The translations under genes and the position numbers were made by a program. A stretch of DNA of 64,000 nt, taken from the IMG/VR virus record IMGVR_UViG_3300049215_000771, positions 434,001-498,000 of that record; one strand, written 5' to 3'. A model generated the notes under the pieces. It was not told where the DNA came from and made no database searches. It saw nothing but the letters and a program-made list of their open reading frames with translations. Shown in pieces: positions 16,169 through 57,826 of this stretch; the first letter of the stretch is position 1; each line of letters opens with the position of its first letter.

Positions 16169-17644
16169 TCACGGTAGGCCCAATTCCTTGCGGGCAACTT
16201 TGTCAATCGGCAAAGGAGCGCCCATCACAGCCGTTCGTCCGCTCGTCGTCGTGGGGAAGGCGATAACTTCCTTCATCGAGTCCTCCTTGCACGCCAACAT
16301 CACCAGTCGGTCAATACCGAGAGCAATCCCTGCGTGTGGTGGAGTGCCGTAGTCGAAGGCTTCCAGCATATGCCCCACGCTGCGTTCGATCTCCGGTTGA
16401 GAATATCCCATTACCTTGTACGTTGCTTCCAGCATCGCCCTGGTATGTGCCCGAACGCTACCTGACCCGATCTCCATGCCGTTGCACACCAGGTCGTACT
16501 GATGAGCAACGATGTCACCCACGTTCTGACCCTGGAGTAGCCAATCACTGTGTTCTTCCAGCGGGGCCGAAAACGGGTTGTGCATGAAGGTCCACGAGGA
16601 CTTGCTGTCCAGCTTATCAACATCTTCCTTCGCCGGCTTGAACATTGGGAAGCGGACGATCCAGCAAAACATCAATGCGCCGGCGTCCTTCTGTGCCTGC
16701 GTCCTGATGTCGGGCTTGTCCGTGCCCCACCGATTCATCGCTTCTTCGTAGGTGAAGATCGGGAAGCTGTTGCCGATGCCGCCGAGATAGGGATAGCGTT
16801 TTAACTGCCCGCCTTCATAGGTCCACGGCTCGTAGAGTTCTTTTTCTTTCTCGTAGTCCCAAATCTTCAGCTTGTAGAAAATAGAACGAACAACTTCCGT
16901 AGCTGTGTGCAACACGCTACTTTCGGTGCCGAAAGCCATTTCCAGGTCAACCTGGGTAAACTCGAAGCCCCGGTCGGAACGAGGAGTCTCGTCCCTGAAG
17001 CACCGAGCAATCTGGTAGTAGGCCGGCACGCCACCCGTCATCAACAATTGCTTGTACTGCTGCGGGCTTTGTGGCAGGGCATAGAACTCGTTGTGGTAGA
17101 GCCGAGAAGGAACAACGAAGTCCCGTGCCCCTTCCTTTGTGGGAGCCGCCAAGATTGGCGTCTCGATCTCCAGAAAACCTCGCCCGTCCAGACACTCACG
17201 GATCGCCTGAAGGGTCTTGGCACGAACCCGAAGGTTGCGTGCCATACGCTTGCGGCGAAGGTCGATGTATCTGTAGCGAAGGCGCTTGTCGATGTCGGTT
17301 TCGTATCCGTCCGACTGAACTGTGATCGGCAGCGGCTTCGTGGCGTTGAGAACTTCGACGTTCCCGACCACGAACTCCACCTTGCCCGTGTACATATCGG
17401 GATTTTCCATGTGTTCAGGGCGGGCTTTCACCTGGCCATGAAACCTCACAACATCTTCGAGATTCAACCCGGCAAGGGTTTTGTTGCGACCGACACACTG
17501 CACGATGTAACCTTCACCATCCCGAAGGTCAATGAAGGTCATTTTGCCGTGGTCACGCTTGGCGTCCACCCACCCCTGGATGGAAAAAAGAGTCGAAGAC
17601 CCCGCCAAACGGACTGTGGACTCAATGCTTGTGTGTTGAGACAT
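16169..17644 (-). CDS. aspS: Aspartyl-tRNA synthetase, compact (GAD domain absent), non-discriminating signature
   Basis: OB fold GWV..KRDHG..FIDLRD; motif 2 QIARCFRDE; GTDKPDIR joined directly to FCWIVRFPMF; motif 3 GIDRL. Start MSQH at 17644. Confidence 0.93.
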   Translation of the reverse strand: MSQHTSIESTVRLAGSSTLFSIQGWVDAKRDHGKMTFIDLRDGEGYIVQCVGRNKTLAGLNLEDVVRFHGQVKARPEHMENPDMYTGKVEFVVGNVEVLNATKPLPITVQSDGYETDIDKRLRYRYIDLRRKRMARNLRVRAKTLQAIRECLDGRGFLEIETPILAAPTKEGARDFVVPSRLYHNEFYALPQSPQQYKQLLMTGGVPAYYQIARCFRDETPRSDRGFEFTQVDLEMAFGTESSVLHTATEVVRSIFYKLKIWDYEKEKELYEPWTYEGGQLKRYPYLGGIGNSFPIFTYEEAMNRWGTDKPDIRTQAQKDAGALMFCWIVRFPMFKPAKEDVDKLDSKSSWTFMHNPFSAPLEEHSDWLLQGQNVGDIVAHQYDLVCNGMEIGSGSVRAHTRAMLEATYKVMGYSQPEIERSVGHMLEAFDYGTPPHAGIALGIDRLVMLACKEDSMKEVIAFPTTTSGRTAVMGAPLPIDKVARKELGLP

Positions 17645-17897
17645 CGTATTCCTCGGTTTCCAAAGGTTCTGTATGTGTTGCCAAAGGCGGCGCAGGGTAG
17701 TGTTCGCACGGAGAAGGCCACCACACAAGTAGCGGCCCCATGACGTTGACTTCCCACCTTCCCCATCGCCCGCCCAAGGCTCGTCTGTAACCACGATACT
17801 CCCAAAAACGACTAGGTTCGCTCGCCTTGCCACGGAGTTTCTTCCAAAGCAAGATCAGGGACCACATGATTGTACTCCGTTTGTTTGAGGTTGTAAA

Positions 17898-22463: not shown

Positions 22464-23003
22464 ATGCTTGACGAATGGTTCAAATGCGCAGTGTGCGGAT
22501 CGAAAGAAGCACCCATCATGAGCATGGGGTACATTTCCCAATGCTATTGTCGAGATTGCGCCGACAACAAAAAAGAAGATTGCAACGCAGCCTTCAAGAA
22601 GGTCCACGACGAAGCTGTGCTTGAAGAAGCCTTTCGCCCCAAAATCAAACACGATGAAATTGACGTGAGAGATGATTACTTTCAGTACATCGTACAAAAC
22701 AAACAAGAACCAGAACTGGAGATGTGCTTCAGGAGAATTGCCGAGCAGGTGTACCTTCTAAAAACTACCACCAAGAAAGATTGGCATAACAACTGGCGCT
22801 GGATTCCTTTCATCGAAAACGTCGATAAAGGGACGTGGCAAGAAGTCCCCAAAGATTTTGTGGAGGCGGCGATCCCGTATTGTTACGACAGGTTGAAAAC
22901 ATACGATGCAGGCAGGGCCACAGCGAAAGATTACTTCACTGCGGCCTGCTGCGGTTTGTATGAGTATGCAAAACTGCACAACTGGCGAGATTGGGCGTAC
23001 TAA
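22464..23003 (+). CDS. Hypothetical protein with an N-terminal CxxC...CxxC
   Basis: CAVC...CRDC zinc-finger-like pattern. Confidence 0.5.
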   Translation: MLDEWFKCAVCGSKEAPIMSMGYISQCYCRDCADNKKEDCNAAFKKVHDEAVLEEAFRPKIKHDEIDVRDDYFQYIVQNKQEPELEMCFRRIAEQVYLLKTTTKKDWHNNWRWIPFIENVDKGTWQEVPKDFVEAAIPYCYDRLKTYDAGRATAKDYFTAACCGLYEYAKLHNWRDWAY

Positions 23004-24421
23004 TACAACTTCCGGTCTTCCGCCTCAAGAATCTTGCCCAAGTTGGGAAAGAAAATTTCCCACCACTCCGTCATCTCGTGCATGATGTCCTGGAGAGTGT
23101 CATAGATTGGGGTTTTCTTGCACTCCTCAATCCACTTGTCACAGTAGGTGTGCCAGAAGAAGTCCGTGAGGGTCTTCAAACCCAGCGGCCAGTTCAGGTC
23201 GTGTTCGATGTAGGTTTGTAATCTCCCAGCGGTCTTGATCCACTCCAGGTAGTATTCCTGGTTCTCTCCCCCAGGACAACCTGGCTCCCAATCCTCCAGC
23301 CCCCACTTCCCATTGCCGTGGATGAACCTGTAGGCATTGACCAGCTTGTTGAGCAGGGCTTTGCCTTTCTTCATGACGGCTTCATCACAGCGGGTGTCCG
23401 TGCCGACCTGGTTGCACGCCGCCCAATAACGAACACCCTCCATGCCGTACTTCTCAACGTAGACGTGCGGCTCGACGAAGTTGCCCGCCGTTTTGCTGAT
23501 CTTGTGGCCGTGCTTGTCCAGGGCGTGGCCGCTGATAATGATTTTCTTCCACGGAACCTGATCGCTGTGATAGAGACTTTTGACGATGGTGAAGAATGCC
23601 CACGTCCTGATGATGTCGTGCGCCTGGAACCTGGCGTCGAAGATCGGGGGATGAAGGGTAGGAATCTTCGTGTGTGCCGCCCACGTCATCTGCGGCGACA
23701 AGCTGGAAGTAAACCAGGTGTCAAAAACGATGTTGTCGGGTTCCCCCGGAATGTGGATGCCGTAGTTACGCTCACGGGAAATAGACCAATCCATCGTGAG
23801 GCCATCCAGCCAGCGATGCAGCCGCTCCTGAAAGACCTTGGGATGCCACTGGATCAGGTCGATAGCCTGCCTGAGACGGTCCAGGTGGTCACGGATGTTG
23901 ATGAACCAGCCCTCGCCTGTCCGTAGCTCGACTTTCTCACCAGAACGCTCGTAGCGGCCTTCCTCGTCGATCTCGGCCTGAGAAACGGAGACACGGGTTT
24001 TGGGGCACCAGAAATAGTCCCTGACGGCTTTGTAGGCGTAGCCCTTCTTGACCAGATCGTGGAACGACATCTCGGCCAAGGCGATGGCGTGGCGGTCATA
24101 GGTGTGGTAGTGATGCTTGCTCCAGCCCATGCCGATTTGTTGGAACAAGTCGGAGTACATCTTCGACGTATTCTCGGCAAACCTGACGATACCGGGCGTA
24201 TCGAAGATTTTGTCCTTCTGTGCCAACTTCTCGGTCGGCAGGCCGTTGCAATCAAAACAGAAAGGGTACAGAAGGGGGTCTTCCTTCTGGCCATCTTCGG
24301 TGAGATGGAAACGCTTGGCCCTGGCAACAAAGTCCATGTGGCAGTACGAGAAAACATGGCCCATATGCAACAGGCCAGAGATCGTCGGCGGCGGAACGTC
24401 GATAAGGTATTTTGGGTCCAT
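23000..24421 (-). CDS. valS: Valyl-tRNA synthetase-like, minimal (CP1 editing domain and C-terminal coiled coil absent)
   Basis: PPPTISGLLHMGH (HIGH), DCNGLPTE, DWSISR, QAHDIIRTW and KISKTAGN (KMSKS). Start MDPK at 24421. Confidence 0.85.
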   Translation of the reverse strand: MDPKYLIDVPPPTISGLLHMGHVFSYCHMDFVARAKRFHLTEDGQKEDPLLYPFCFDCNGLPTEKLAQKDKIFDTPGIVRFAENTSKMYSDLFQQIGMGWSKHHYHTYDRHAIALAEMSFHDLVKKGYAYKAVRDYFWCPKTRVSVSQAEIDEEGRYERSGEKVELRTGEGWFINIRDHLDRLRQAIDLIQWHPKVFQERLHRWLDGLTMDWSISRERNYGIHIPGEPDNIVFDTWFTSSLSPQMTWAAHTKIPTLHPPIFDARFQAHDIIRTWAFFTIVKSLYHSDQVPWKKIIISGHALDKHGHKISKTAGNFVEPHVYVEKYGMEGVRYWAACNQVGTDTRCDEAVMKKGKALLNKLVNAYRFIHGNGKWGLEDWEPGCPGGENQEYYLEWIKTAGRLQTYIEHDLNWPLGLKTLTDFFWHTYCDKWIEECKKTPIYDTLQDIMHEMTEWWEIFFPNLGKILEAEDRKLY

Positions 24422-24604
24422 GCCAGATGATACTACGATTTTGTGAGTTTGTAAGGTCGCAATTGTTTTTCGGTGAGCGGTATCCACGGCAAATCGGGAC
24501 GATTTTCCATGCACCCGCCACAAGGACGAGAAACGTCCTTGTGGCAGGGATGGACTCTATCTTCCGGGAGGAAACCCACGTCCTTGGCGTATCTCCAAGG
24601 ACAT

Positions 24605-25468: not shown

Positions 25469-25861
25469 ATGAATTTCCGTCAATTCCTTGAACATGAATT
25501 CCGCTTCCAGGGAGAAACTGTTGGTATCATTACGGCATATAACCCCAATGGTGAAACAATATCCTCCCGTGAGAACCGTAAACTGAATAAACGGCTCTGG
25601 AACGATCTGCGGGCCACTGGATATGACCCGTGGGCGATCAAAGGCAACTACAAAGGAGCCGCAGAACAGTCGTTCTTGGTTTCTGATATTTCTCGTGCGG
25701 ATTTGATCCGCCTGGCTAAGAAATACGACCAGGAGGCCGTCGTGTGGGGCAGGAAAACAGACAATGGCTATGACGTTGAATGGATTGAAGGCGAAGAAAC
25801 AACAAAACGTGACAAGGTGTCCAACATCAGGTCGTTAATTTCGCAGTCAACGAAATTCTGA
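25469..25861 (+). CDS. DUF3293-like protein with a capsid-targeting-like N-terminus
   Basis: IITAYNP..E...N...N..L pattern; starts MNFRQFLE. Confidence 0.6.
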   Translation: MNFRQFLEHEFRFQGETVGIITAYNPNGETISSRENRKLNKRLWNDLRATGYDPWAIKGNYKGAAEQSFLVSDISRADLIRLAKKYDQEAVVWGRKTDNGYDVEWIEGEETTKRDKVSNIRSLISQSTKF

Positions 25862-26435
25862 CCTCGTTGGCATCTGCCTTGCCCTTCAGTTCCTTCATCA
25901 CCTGGCCGACCAAGGAGTTGAGCGCCGCCTGTTTGCCCTTCTTGAAGTCGGCTACCGCTTTGGCGTTTCCTGCAATCACCTTGTCAACGGCATCGGCCAG
26001 TGCGTCCCCGCCCTCGCCAAAAAATCCGTCTCGGCAAATTACATCGAAAGCCGCCACGCCTTCCCAGCATTCCTCGAAAACATCTCGCACTTGCTTCGCA
26101 GAAAGTACGCCGTGGTGACGCAGAAACAACAGATATGCGATGTCTTCTTGGAGCCAGGGGCGATATTCTTTCACTTCTGCAATGGACTCGCCCGCTTCAT
26201 CCATCTTGACCTTGAACTCGTTCGTGAGAAACTTGGCGATAGAAACAGCAAACTGCGCTCGCTCCAGCTTCTCACGCACTGTGTCTATTATACCCAAATT
26301 GGTCAGTCCCCAAGGCCAGCAGGACATGAATTCACATAAAAAAGCAGCGGCATTCAGCCTTCCCTGGGGAGTCTTCAGGTCTTTCTGAAACTCGAACCAG
26401 TAGTGCCGAACGACGGCCAGTTCTTCGTTTGTCAT
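25827..26435 (-). CDS. GatB/YqeY C-terminal (tRNA-binding) domain protein
   Basis: VIAGNAKAVADFKKGKQAALNSLVGQVMKELKGKADAN matches the GatB C-terminus; the catalytic GatB N-terminal domain is absent. Confidence 0.85.
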   Translation of the reverse strand: MTNEELAVVRHYWFEFQKDLKTPQGRLNAAAFLCEFMSCWPWGLTNLGIIDTVREKLERAQFAVSIAKFLTNEFKVKMDEAGESIAEVKEYRPWLQEDIAYLLFLRHHGVLSAKQVRDVFEECWEGVAAFDVICRDGFFGEGGDALADAVDKVIAGNAKAVADFKKGKQAALNSLVGQVMKELKGKADANEVRISLTAKLTT

Positions 26436-28072: not shown

Positions 28073-28558
28073 CTACGTCCCCTCAATCTCCCGAATGTAG
28101 TGGCGAGCCATTTCAATGCCGCTGGGGTTGGGAATCATTGCCGCCTTCTGTCCCAGGAGGCAGGCGGCGATGAGGGCCGCATCCAAAGGCGGAACCGCCG
28201 CAAAGGTCGGCCCAGGCCCGGTGATCCTCACCATGCTGATATGATACCGATGAGGCGTGCAGTAGGTATCTTTCGACATCTCCACCGAGATGATGCAGTG
28301 GTCATCACGGCGACGGTCGATCACCCGGCACAAACCAACCTCAACCTGCCACATGCCGTTTCGAGGGCATTTGTCGGGATTCTCCACCTGCCATCGACTG
28401 CGCTCCACTGCTTCGCATTCGGTGTTGGAGTACACCGGGCTTTCTTCAGCCGGGTACTTGTCCGCAGCTTCCCTCATCTCGACGCCCATCTGAATCATGG
28501 CGGCGATGGTGTAGGGAACGAAATCATCAGGACTTCGCTTCTTCGTTTCCATAGTCAT
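28073..28558 (-). CDS. Hypothetical protein
   Basis: Start trimmed to MTMETKK to limit overlap with thrS. Confidence 0.5.
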   Translation of the reverse strand: MTMETKKRSPDDFVPYTIAAMIQMGVEMREAADKYPAEESPVYSNTECEAVERSRWQVENPDKCPRNGMWQVEVGLCRVIDRRRDDHCIISVEMSKDTYCTPHRYHISMVRITGPGPTFAAVPPLDAALIAACLLGQKAAMIPNPSGIEMARHYIREIEGT

Positions 28559-29753
28559 ACCCGAAATCGAACTCGTTGAGGTAAGCTGCCTCGGCGAAGA
28601 AATCTCGCTTCGGCAAGGTCTTGTTAGTTCCGTCCCGCTCTCGAACAGTGACGGTTTCGGCTTCCACTTCCCGGTCCCCGATGATGAGCATTCGGGGGAT
28701 GTATTTCTCCTGAGCGATGGCAACCATCTGCGCCACCCGTTTGCCGGAAAGATCAACCATCGGACGAAGTTTCCAGTTCTCCAGCTTCACCTTCAGATCG
28801 AAACAGTAGCCCCTGGCCTTGTCAGTAACAGGCAGGATGGCGTACTGAATGGGGGCGAGCCACACAGGAAGGTGCCCCTGGTAGTGTTCGAGCAGGATGC
28901 CGATGAACCGCTCGAAGCTGCCATAAATGGCACGGTGTACAACCACAGGGGTTTTGCGGGCGTTGTCATGGTCAGTGTACTCCAAACCGAACCGAATGGG
29001 AAGCTGGAAATCCAACTGAATCGTTGCGGTCTGCCATTCCCGGCCTTGGCTGTCTTTCACGAAGAAGTCGATCTTGGGGCCGTAGAATGCCCCTCCACGG
29101 GGGTCTTCGGTGTAATTGGCGTAAGAACCCTGGAGCGAGGCCCGAAGATCGTCTTCAGCCTTGTCCCAGGTCGCCACTTCGCCCATGAAGTTCACCGGCC
29201 TGGTGGACAGCACGGCCCGGAGTTCCATGCCCAGCTTCCAATAGACACGCTGGACCATGACACAAAGCATGGTGATTTCTTTGTCGATTTGATCGGGAGC
29301 GAGGAAGATGTGAGCGTCGTCCTGGCAGAAGGAGCGACAGCGAGTGAGGCCGCTGAGAGCGCCGGAAACCTCGTCACGATGCAGAACACCTTGGTCGGCG
29401 ATGCGGAGGGGAAGTTCTTCGATGGAGCGAGCGCCTTTGGCCTTGTAGATTTCCATGTGGCCGGGGCAGTTCATTGGTTTCGGGATCAACAGGACATCTT
29501 CATCTTTGCCGTGGACCCCGAACATATTCTCTTTGTAGTGTTCCCAATGCCCGGAGATTTCGTACAACTCACGCTTCCACAGGATCGGAGTGCGTACTTC
29601 CTGGTAGTTCCATTGCTTCTGGATGGCCCGAATCTTGTCCTGGAGGATGGTGTAAACGATGTTGCCGTTGGGAAGCCAGATGGGGCAGCCGGGGGCCAGG
29701 TCGGAGAACATGAACAGGTCCATCTCACGACCGATTTCACGATGATCTTTCAT
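28527..29753 (-). CDS. thrS: Threonyl-tRNA synthetase lacking N1/N2 (editing) domains
   Basis: Begins at DHREIG; KPMNCPGH, HRDE.SGAL.GLTR.R.F.QDDAHIF, GGAFYGPKID, IHRA-type VVHRAIYGSFERF and an anticodon-binding domain. Confidence 0.95.
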   Translation of the reverse strand: MKDHREIGREMDLFMFSDLAPGCPIWLPNGNIVYTILQDKIRAIQKQWNYQEVRTPILWKRELYEISGHWEHYKENMFGVHGKDEDVLLIPKPMNCPGHMEIYKAKGARSIEELPLRIADQGVLHRDEVSGALSGLTRCRSFCQDDAHIFLAPDQIDKEITMLCVMVQRVYWKLGMELRAVLSTRPVNFMGEVATWDKAEDDLRASLQGSYANYTEDPRGGAFYGPKIDFFVKDSQGREWQTATIQLDFQLPIRFGLEYTDHDNARKTPVVVHRAIYGSFERFIGILLEHYQGHLPVWLAPIQYAILPVTDKARGYCFDLKVKLENWKLRPMVDLSGKRVAQMVAIAQEKYIPRMLIIGDREVEAETVTVRERDGTNKTLPKRDFFAEAAYLNEFDFGYDYGNEEAKS

Positions 29754-29818: not shown

Positions 29819-30319
29819 CTAAAGGTTCACGACCAATCCCAATTTTTGCGCCACATCCATCAGGGCTTCGTTGACCATCTCGACCTCAGCCAGCGATAGA
29901 ATGATCGGCGGGCGTTGGTACATCTTGGACGGGGCGGTGGCAGCCACAGCCACGGTTTTCTGTTTCTTTGGCTGTTTCTTGGGTTTGGGAAACTCCAAGA
30001 TTTCCTTCTGTTCAGGCACAGGCTTCTTCGCCCGCTTCTTCGGCGTCATCTTAGCGCCGTGTTCGTCGGTGATGACTGTCACCAAACGATACTCAGTGAT
30101 TGTTACGGACTCCAGCACAAACAGGATTTCGTCCTTGACTGTGTATACGGAGTAAGGAAGGCGGGGCATGGGATAGGGAAGAAGTTCCTTTTTCTTCACC
30201 ACCCTCGATTCCTTCACGGCCTTGACGATTTCATTGACTCCTTCATTTGCGTGAACCGCCGCCCGCTGTCGCCAGCGGAGCAGTGCATGGTCGGTCACAT
30301 GCACGATTTCGGCCCTCAT
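29819..30319 (-). CDS. Hypothetical protein with a T-x-HA-x-x-RW-x-x-R motif
   Basis: HVTDHALLRWRQR; AAGGAGG RBS; similar motif in 40428-40955. Confidence 0.6.
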   Translation of the reverse strand: MRAEIVHVTDHALLRWRQRAAVHANEGVNEIVKAVKESRVVKKKELLPYPMPRLPYSVYTVKDEILFVLESVTITEYRLVTVITDEHGAKMTPKKRAKKPVPEQKEILEFPKPKKQPKKQKTVAVAATAPSKMYQRPPIILSLAEVEMVNEALMDVAQKLGLVVNL

Positions 30320-30340
30320 CGTGGTCCTCCTTCAAGTTCA

Positions 30341-30578
30341 GAGAACCATCCCCGTAGCCTGGATTCTGTTCTATGTCGTCATTTATCTCAGGTTTCCCTG
30401 GCCTTGCGGCTGCACCAACCAGACCGTCACAGCCCTGCTCACCGGCTAGGTCAAATTTGGCTTGCACCCTCCGAAGTGCGAACGATACTTCCCTTGCGGG
30501 TGTCTCTCCTTCGTTAAGCAGTAGTGTCCAGAACTTCCTCTAAGGATTACTCCCCAGCGACGACTCGGAATGGTTCTC
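30341..30578 (-). ncRNA. rnpB: Minimal type-A RNase P RNA
   Basis: Helices paired by hand: P1 GAGAACCATTCC/GGGATGGTTCTC; P2 GTCGTCG/TGACGAC; P3 GTAA hairpin; P4 AGT(T)CTGGA/TCCAGGCT with bulged U; P6 CTGCTTA/TGAGCAG; P15-P17. Conserved GAGGAAG, GCAAGCCAAAT, AGATAAATG and AACAGAA..C.GGCTA. Confidence 0.88.
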
Positions 30579-30923
30579 CGTCCCTGATTGTACCACGATT
30601 TTGGCCGGTTTGCTATACTCCTCCCCACGATATTTGTCACAGCCCGCCTTGAATTCTTCTTCTGGCGGTAGGGCCGGCTCCACGGTCATCTTGACACCGT
30701 AGATAGCGGCCAGCTTCCTGAACAAGTCCGGGTAATACCAGCAGCGATTATGCCCCTGCTGATCCACCCATTCCTGCAAGATAGACCGTGCAATCCGCTC
30801 ACGGTTCACAGTTTCTTCCAGTTTCTCGAAGTTTTCCTGCGCCCAATGCCAGGTTTCGTCATCGCAGGTGTGCGGGGAATCCCCGAAAACTTGCTGGAGG
30901 AAATCAATGAAAGTCTGATCCAT
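30540..30923 (-). CDS. Hypothetical protein; its 3' end overlaps the RNase P RNA 5' end
   Basis: ORF from MDQTF. Confidence 0.5.
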   Translation of the reverse strand: MDQTFIDFLQQVFGDSPHTCDDETWHWAQENFEKLEETVNRERIARSILQEWVDQQGHNRCWYYPDLFRKLAAIYGVKMTVEPALPPEEEFKAGCDKYRGEEYSKPAKIVVQSGTENHSESSLGSNP

Positions 30924-31593
30924 TCGTAGCTCTCCGGTTCTGCCCATCTTGAACGGGCTGCGACCCCAGCGCCATTTTGCGCCAGCAAACGATGCAAATG
31001 CCGTCCATCAGGCTGCCGTTGTCGATAATGCCGTTACAACCCTTGCACAAACTTTCGTTCTTGCGTGGCGAAGCCGCCCGCATGTCTTCACGATTGGGAA
31101 CGTAGTGGCCGGCTTGCTTCAGAATGGCAACGGCCTCCTCGTCAGTTTTGTGCAGCGACAGGACGACACGGTTGAAGGGAATGCCACCTGTCTGTCGCTC
31201 ATCAACAAACTTGGTGTTGCCCTGGCGCATGATCTCGATGTCTTTCTCGGAAAGCATCAAAAACATCGAACCATCTTTGCCGGTGACGAAGATCATTTGA
31301 ACTCCTTCTTCACGGGGTCGTAGGAATCGTCTTCTTGAACGAATTGTCGCATGAGGGTGCGAAGAGGTTCCGGCATCTGCTCCGTGATCTCGTAGTACAT
31401 TCCCTGTCCAAGAATACCTAGCACGACACGCACAGTGTTCTTGGCATGGCCACTATTGTCAGCGAGGCCAACCGAAAGATGCCAGGCTTGTTTGTCAATT
31501 TCGGGCGTGAAGTATTCGTAGGTCAACATGATGTTGAGCAATTCATCATTGAACTCAACATTCTCCCACAGACAGATTTCCGGGGCAAAGGGG

Positions 31594-46938: not shown

Positions 46939-48141
46939 TCATTTCTTCAACACCACCGAAGAACCATCGCTCCGATCCCGAATCTCACAACCCAGGTCGA
47001 TGATCCTTCTTTTCAGGGCATCGGCCCCAGCCCAATTTCGCTGCCGCCTGCATTCCTCTCGGAGTTTGGCAAGCTGGATGGCGTCGTCGGGAGCATCCTC
47101 ATCCGAGAACATCTGGAAACCGAGTAATTCGGCTTGCTCCAGGCTGGGATTCACGAAAGTCGCTGCGATGGCTTCCGAAGTATTCAGGTTGGCGTCCATC
47201 GCCTTGGCGAAATCTTCCGAAACTCCATGTTCTGGTGCCGACTTCAGCCGATTCCTCAAAGCCTTCCACTGTTGCGCCGAAGTCCCATCCAACAACCCTT
47301 CAACGGATAAAGGTTTGGCATAACTGGCCGAGAGAATCCAGAAGCGAATCACGTTGGGGTCCGTGCCATTCGCCCGATAGTCCCGGATGTTGACGGCGTT
47401 CCCCTCGGATTTTCCCATCCTCCTGTCGCCGATCTGAACCATCCCATTGTGGAGCCAGATGTCCGCCAAGGGCGATCCGGCATGAAGGCATTCGGACTGA
47501 GCGATCTCATTCTCGTGATGCGGAAACTTCAAATCGTCGCCGCCCACATGAATATCCACCGTGAACCCAATGGTCCTTTCAATCATGATGGAGCATTCAA
47601 GATGCCAACCAGGTCGCCCCTTGGGGAATTCAGACTCATTGGCCTTCGGCCCCTTCCACAAAACGAAATCTTCCGCCGTTTTCCGACGTGAAAGTTTCCC
47701 ATATCCAGGGAACGTCTTCGTTTTGAAGCGAATGTCGCCATCTTTGTGGTAAGCATGGCCACTTTCGACAAGCGCCGTAGCTGCAACCTTCATCGGGATC
47801 ATGTAGTCCGTCACACGGGGGTACAAGTCCGCCTTCTGGACGTTCAGCCAGCCCATGTCATTGAAATAGTCGTCGATGAAGCGGTCAGCCAGTTCTTTGC
47901 TGGTCACGCCCTCCTTTGCCGCCCGATCCACGATTTTGTCGTCCACGTCCGTAAAATTCTGAACGTGGTAGACCTTCTGCCGGCGTTTGAGCCAGCGTTT
48001 CAGCACGTCCCACACAACATAGCTCCTGGCGTGTCCCAGGTGGCAGTAGTCGTAGACCGTTACACCACAAGCGTACATAGTGATCGGGCGGTCACTAGGG
48101 ACTTCTTTTTCACGCCGGGTTAGGGAGTCGTGCAGTTTCAT
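46939..48141 (-). CDS. cysS: Cysteinyl-tRNA synthetase (compact)
   Basis: YACGVTVYDYCHLGHARS, NFTDVDDKI, GRPGWHLECS, FPHHENE and MGKSEGN motifs; start MKLHD at 48141. Confidence 0.95.
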   Translation of the reverse strand: MKLHDSLTRREKEVPSDRPITMYACGVTVYDYCHLGHARSYVVWDVLKRWLKRRQKVYHVQNFTDVDDKIVDRAAKEGVTSKELADRFIDDYFNDMGWLNVQKADLYPRVTDYMIPMKVAATALVESGHAYHKDGDIRFKTKTFPGYGKLSRRKTAEDFVLWKGPKANESEFPKGRPGWHLECSIMIERTIGFTVDIHVGGDDLKFPHHENEIAQSECLHAGSPLADIWLHNGMVQIGDRRMGKSEGNAVNIRDYRANGTDPNVIRFWILSASYAKPLSVEGLLDGTSAQQWKALRNRLKSAPEHGVSEDFAKAMDANLNTSEAIAATFVNPSLEQAELLGFQMFSDEDAPDDAIQLAKLREECRRQRNWAGADALKRRIIDLGCEIRDRSDGSSVVLKK

Positions 48142-48177
48142 GCGCCCATAGTACCCCGATTTAGAAGAAGTGTAAAG

Positions 48178-48256
48178 TAGCCTCGGTGGGAGTCGAACCC
48201 ACATCCTTTCGGCACCGGGTTTAAGCCGGCTGCGTATACCGTTCCGCCACGAGGCC
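48178..48256 (-). tRNA. tRNA-Leu(TAA)
   Basis: GCCGG-CTTAAAC-CCGGT, V arm, A73. Confidence 0.9.
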
Positions 48257-48301
48257 ATTCAACCAAATCGGTTGAAAGTTGGTGTTTTCAACCGATTTGG
48301 T

Positions 48302-57735: not shown

Positions 57736-57826
57736 TTGGCAAGGTGGGATTCGATACCCACACGGTAGATTCGTCAACCTACCAACCCCCTCTAGCGGGG
57801 GCTGCGTCTTCTTCCGCCACTTGCCA
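57736..57826 (-). tRNA. tRNA-like RNA with an aberrant anticodon loop (GCTAGA) and 8-nt T loop
   Basis: TGGCAAG/CTTGCCA, A73; CCCCC-GCTAGA-GGGGG; 8-bp V arm; GTGGG-TATCGAAT-CCCAC. Confidence 0.6.

Follow-up and report, generated by a model that had tools for sequence, protein, structure and literature searches.

A miniature RNase P RNA encoded by a huge phage, with homologues in over a hundred other phage contigs

RNase P, the RNA enzyme that trims transfer RNAs, is among the few ribozymes universal to cellular life. In the bacterial type A form (Rfam RF00010; E. coli M1 RNA, rnpB) the RNA is 377 nt long in E. coli and combines a catalytic domain with a specificity (S) domain, P7-P14, whose CR-II and CR-III elements bind the tRNA T loop. 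Natural reduction of the S-domain appears to have occurred in the archaeal type T RNA of Pyrobaculum and relatives, a cellular RNA of about 200 nt that works with archaeal proteins (Lai et al. 2010), and laboratory constructs indicate that a type A or B catalytic domain with little or no S-domain can still cleave pre-tRNA, especially with the protein subunit (Waugh et al. 1989; Green et al. 1996; Loria and Pan). The only virus-encoded RNase P-like RNA found in the papers searched is a camelpox candidate (PMC3001073), which belongs to a virus of eukaryotes, has only loose structural similarity, and showed no pre-tRNA processing activity in vitro; no covarying family was described for it. Theta (HDV-like) ribozymes (PMC10879173) are phage-encoded, genetically linked to phage tRNA genes and proposed to mature them, but they are small self-cleaving ribozymes acting in cis at tRNA 3' ends, and not a trans-acting RNase P homologue acting at 5' ends.

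The locus considered here lies in a 64,000-nt stretch (the window) of a 532,729-bp IMG/VR contig, IMGVR_UViG_3300049215_000771. A preliminary description had proposed a minimal RNase P RNA at 30341-30578, much shorter than E. coli M1 RNA, and this is confirmed. No report of a phage-encoded RNase P RNA was found in the open-access literature searched, and neither the DLP6 paper nor the huge-phage paper mentions RNase P in its main text.

The RNA and its covarying fold

The RNA lies on the minus strand between two minus-strand ORFs, 30540-30947 and 29819-30319. At curated gathering thresholds Rfam 15 reports only tRNAs, ten in the window, but with E-value thresholds the bacterial class A model matches over model positions 1-367, at 53.4 bits and E 2.8e-15. 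This is below the gathering score of 100 bits only because the S-domain is almost absent, about 115 nt of the model having no counterpart. RF00010 was the best match of its clan, although one lower-scoring overlapping clan match was left out of the scan output and not named. Unlike type T, the phage RNA has a bacterial type A sequence and fold, and keeps a conserved mini-domain. Folding of the single sequence gave an unremarkable z-score of -2.26, a method that cannot show the pseudoknots.

The helix assignment was projected onto plain MAFFT alignments, made without structure information. With 106 sequences, 86.1% of cells form a standard pair, against 35-44% (about 37%) when the 3' partners are slid by 1-3 columns, and the covariation score is 0.616 against about 0.1 for the slid controls; with 32 sequences the values are 83.4% against about 36-43%, and 0.594 against 0.10-0.16. 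In both alignments 0 of 500 shuffles reach the observed score. Values for individual helices are given in Table 1; P1 varies in sequence and is poorly aligned. Compared with P4 of E. coli (AAGUCCGGG/CCCGGCUU), that of the window (AGUUCUGGA/UCCAGGCU) keeps every pair and the bulged U, while four pairs are changed in a compensating way. Several positions that were not imposed by the search pattern are invariant or nearly so: the J5/15 adenines, the GGU of the P15/16 loop, and the A after the P4 3' strand. In the bacterial holoenzyme these parts form the active site and dock the acceptor end.

Most of the elements in the preliminary description are supported by this covariation, namely P4 with its bulged U, the P6 pseudoknot, P15-P17 with the GGU loop, and the CCC-GCAA-GGG hairpin. 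The exception is the AACGA/UCGUU stem that had been proposed to close the reduced S-domain, which pairs in only 54% of cells, no better than chance (427 of 500 shuffles reach it). Comparative data give a different closing helix, CGAAG/CUUCG, followed by a conserved GA, a hairpin of variable length whose three basal pairs covary, and a conserved strand GUU(N)3A. This 42-nt element replaces a span of 156 nt in E. coli (P7 5' strand to P7 3' strand), and P8-P14, CR-II and CR-III have no alignable counterpart. In two family members, L340 and L322 (viral loci in Table 1), the variable hairpin contains a sequence that looks like a tRNA T arm (GGGTTCAAGTCCCACC; AAAGTTCGAATCTTT).

Table 1. Positions of the miniature RNase P RNA, its parts, and other features. 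Coordinates are those of the window unless a locus (L number) is named; nt n of the RNA corresponds to window coordinate 30579-n. Percentages are cells paired in the 106-sequence alignment.
Feature	Position (strand)	Partner or content	Support
Whole RNA	30341-30578 (-)	238 nt	RF00010 match at 30339-30576 (-); aligns with 105 homologues
P1 5' strand	30567-30578 (-)	Pairs with 30341-30352	12 bp in the window RNA; 70%; all 12 pairs change on both sides
P2 5' strand	30559-30564 (-)	Pairs with 30375-30380	95.7%; 5 of 6 pairs change on both sides
P3 hairpin	30540-30557 (-)	7 bp with a GUAA loop	86.6% for the six basal pairs, 5 of them with changes on both sides
Conserved region I and P4 5' strand	30527-30540 (-)	GAGGAA; AGUUCUGGA; bulged U at 30533; P4 pairs with 30356-30363	97.3%; 5 of 8 pairs change on both sides
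P5 5' strand	30523-30526 (-)	Pairs with 30465-30468	99.3%; all 4 pairs covary
P6 pseudoknot 5' strand	30515-30521 (-)	CUGCUUA; pairs with UGAGCAG at 30435-30441 in the P17 loop	70-86%; all 7 pairs change on both sides
Miniature S-domain	30472-30513 (-)	42 nt; 5-bp closing helix CGAAG/CUUCG; GA strand; hairpin at 30484-30506 that includes CCC-GCAA-GGG; GUUCGCA strand ending in an A at 30477	Closing helix 92%, 4 of 5 pairs compensatory; hairpin base 88-91%, covarying; A at 30477 nearly invariant (at least 90% of 106 sequences)
J5/15	30462-30464 (-)	CAA	Both adenines (A116, A117) invariant in 106 sequences
P15-P16-P17 arm	30414-30461 (-)	P15 30459-61 with 30414-16; P16 30449-52 with 30422-25; P17 30444-47 with 30431-34; GGU loop at 30418-30420	P15 95.6%, P16 90.5%, P17 77.5%, all covarying; G159 and U161 invariant, G160 over 90% conserved
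Two small hairpins in the P18 position	30389-30410 (-)	GCC-GCAA-GGC and CAGG-GAAA-CCUG	Can be drawn in the window RNA; variable, absent from the shortest family members
Conserved region IV, P2 3' strand, conserved region V	30356-30388 (-)	AGAUAAAUG; ACAGAA plus the P4 3' strand	Aligned to the model consensus with high posterior probability; used as search anchors, so invariance is partly imposed
166-aa ORF	29819-30319 (-)	Just downstream of the RNA	Weak structural leads to RelE/DUF4258-type RNase toxins in the N-terminal part (TM 0.35-0.44); lysine-rich tail
Translation island	16169-17833, 23000-24523, 28527-29753, 46939-48258, 25827-26435 (all -)	Class II Asp/Lys/Asn-type, class I Ile/Leu/Met/Val-type, Thr/Pro-type and Cys aminoacyl-tRNA synthetases, plus a GatB/YqeY-domain protein	
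tRNA genes	38882-63080 (-)	14 tRNAs	Ten match the Rfam tRNA model
Suppressor-like tRNA	57736-57826 (-)		Odd T arm
DLP6 homologue	L241 2305-2553 (+)	KU682439.2 about 105774-106022	RF00010, 54.7 bits, E 1.1e-14
735-kb phage homologue	L242 3987-4211 (+)	LR756501.1 about 181314-181534	Found by BLAST
Family member	L340 746-1017 (-)		
Family member	L322 791-1058 (-)		
tmRNA	L147 2547-2924 (+)		
tmRNA	L159 6227-6635 (-)		

Homologues in phages and their genomic context

Viral contigs were scanned with a pattern anchored on conserved regions I, IV and V, with a spacing too short for a normal bacterial RNA (257 nt in E. coli). Three spacing ranges gave 43, 60 and 42 loci, and a profile built from the first alignment confirmed 87 of the 101 loci in the two later scans. 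After removal of duplicates there are 105 distinct homologues, of about 195-290 nt by their anchor spacing, and many lie on contigs of 170-500 kb. As the family search rests on anchored patterns plus a sequence profile, rather than a family-specific covariance model, divergent members are missed and the anchor motifs look more invariant than they are. An exact 15-mer from conserved region I gave mostly chance hits, and these loci (about 1.08 Mb) served as a negative control in which only the window's own contig (two loci) and the loci L046 and L090 matched the family profile. No RNase P RNA occurs in the flanks of two relatives of the neighbouring synthetase (L002, L003).

BLAST found copies independently of the pattern in deposited phage genomes: the 735-kb LR756501/LR756503 and the 635-kb LR745206 huge phages (LR756501.1, LR756503.1 and LR745206.1, records without annotation), and the cultured Stenotrophomonas phage vB_SmaS-DLP_6 (DLP6). 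The 735-kb copy has ACAGGA where the others have ACAGAA. In DLP6 the RNA lies in an unannotated 258-nt gap directly upstream of tRNA-Arg-CCG, inside a tRNA cluster of 30 genes as counted by the DLP6 paper. BLAST of the 2-kb region, and of family members L127 and L133, against deposited phages gave nothing.

The same pattern in one genome per prokaryotic species gave 74 hits, of which only two match the phage profile strongly (E 1e-39 to 1e-45). One is a 546-kb contig binned as Bacteriovoracaceae, the other a 3-kb contig with 13 tRNAs binned as Roizmanbacteria, and both are probably misbinned phage DNA. Other hits are short RNase P RNAs (about 250 nt) in bins of Elusimicrobia, some Gammaproteobacteria, a Dojkabacteria bin and DPANN archaea. 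These look cellular, give weak or no hits to the phage profile (E 1e-10 or worse), and have a different layout that keeps recognisable CR-II/CR-III-like strands (ACAGAAAC ... GUGAAA..AAAC).

The genes sit among tRNAs. Of the 105 homologues, 78 have at least one tRNA in the DNA examined (844 tRNAs in 979 kb overall), with the nearest tRNA within 100 nt in 47, within 500 nt in 58, and on the same strand in 77 of 78. In several loci (L125, L133, L158, L159 and L164) the RNA is bracketed by tRNAs, and its ends would then be made by ordinary tRNA processing. Two related phage loci also encode a tmRNA, another known RNase P substrate, within a few kb of the mini RNase P gene. The window copy is different, being flanked by ORFs and about 8 kb from the nearest tRNA, and no sigma-70-like promoter or terminator flanks it. 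The order RNA, 166-aa ORF, threonyl/prolyl-type synthetase recurs in L046, a second phage contig. A 135-aa ORF that overlaps the 5' end of the RNA is not conserved in relatives, so the overlap is probably meaningless.

The window is phage DNA. Apart from the translation island it encodes CTP synthase and ribonucleotide reductase, and has matches to a tail-fibre protein, an SbcD-like nuclease, an HNH endonuclease and, in one ORF of 95-165 aa, the T4 Gp23 major capsid family (E 1.9e-12), which may be a piece of a capsid gene split by an in-frame stop codon. Suppressor-type tRNAs that read stop codons occur in the window and in related loci (L124, L132, L134 with CTA; L125, L139 with TTA), hinting at stop-codon reassignment in these phages. 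None of the 14 window tRNAs encodes CCA, although the CCA-binding GGU is conserved, but 13 of 14 have a C right after the discriminator base. Across the family, phages encode CCA either on nearly all tRNAs (for example DLP6 12/12 and L133 28/28) or on almost none (window 0/14, L144 0/21, L326 0/24).

Probable function and alternatives

The most likely account, held with fair confidence, is that the locus encodes a working RNA subunit of RNase P that belongs to the phage. The RNA would be made from the long minus-strand transcription unit, most likely bind the host RnpA protein, and cut the 5' leaders off the many phage-encoded pre-tRNAs, and perhaps off tmRNA in relatives that carry one, giving the phage its own supply of tRNA-maturing activity. 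Homology, selection for the fold and linkage to tRNA genes are well supported, whereas catalysis, the protein partner, the substrates and the benefit to the phage are inferred; no cleavage, expression or end-mapping data exist. Since the T-loop-binding elements could not be aligned, substrate affinity might be poor. No rnpA gene was found, with no Ribonuclease_P Pfam match among 99 window ORFs of 95-165 aa, but the window is only 64 kb of the contig, and host RnpA could serve.

The preliminary description inferred that the reduced S-domain could suit non-canonical tRNA-like substrates nearby. A ribozyme that no longer checks the tRNA elbow might process atypical tRNAs, tRNA-like structures that punctuate polycistronic mRNAs, or its own precursor, and would not simply duplicate the host enzyme. 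The conserved strands of the replacement element, the scatter of window tRNAs among ORFs on one strand, and the suppressor-like tRNA with an odd T arm are compatible with this, and it remains possible but unlikely. It has no support here, since most neighbouring tRNAs are canonical, and in relatives the gene sits in ordinary tRNA arrays. Conservation of the small element could equally mean that a compact elbow-binding module is retained.

A catalytically dead decoy, soaking up host RnpA or competing with host M1 RNA to shut down host tRNA maturation, is very unlikely. The regions that, from the T. maritima structure, probably bind the protein in bacterial holoenzymes (P2-P3, conserved regions IV and V) are kept, and the poxvirus RNA was once discussed as a possible decoy (PMC3001073), but the most conserved residues are those needed for chemistry and substrate docking and not for protein binding, and a decoy would also starve the phage's own tRNAs, encoded next to it. 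A decaying fragment of a host rnpB gene, or cellular DNA misfiled as viral, might be suggested by the low Rfam score and the two bacterial bins, but is all but excluded. A pseudogene would not keep this pairing through hundreds of compensating changes in 106 lineages, the same architecture is present in a cultured, fully sequenced phage and in curated huge-phage genomes, and the window has tail-fibre and capsid matches.

It is more likely than not that this is the first family of virus-encoded catalytic RNase P RNAs, a distinct, natural minimal class in which a conserved element of about 40-60 nt replaces the whole bacterial specificity domain, spread through huge phages and present in at least one cultured T4-like phage, and which may use a new way of recognising substrates. 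Curated score cut-offs hide this class from routine annotation. The family offers more than 100 natural experiments on how small an RNase P RNA can be and on what can replace the S-domain, and the copy in DLP6 provides a system that can be tested at the bench. Such a lineage would add tRNA 5' maturation to the translation functions that huge phages carry for themselves (tRNAs, synthetases, tmRNA, ribosomal proteins).
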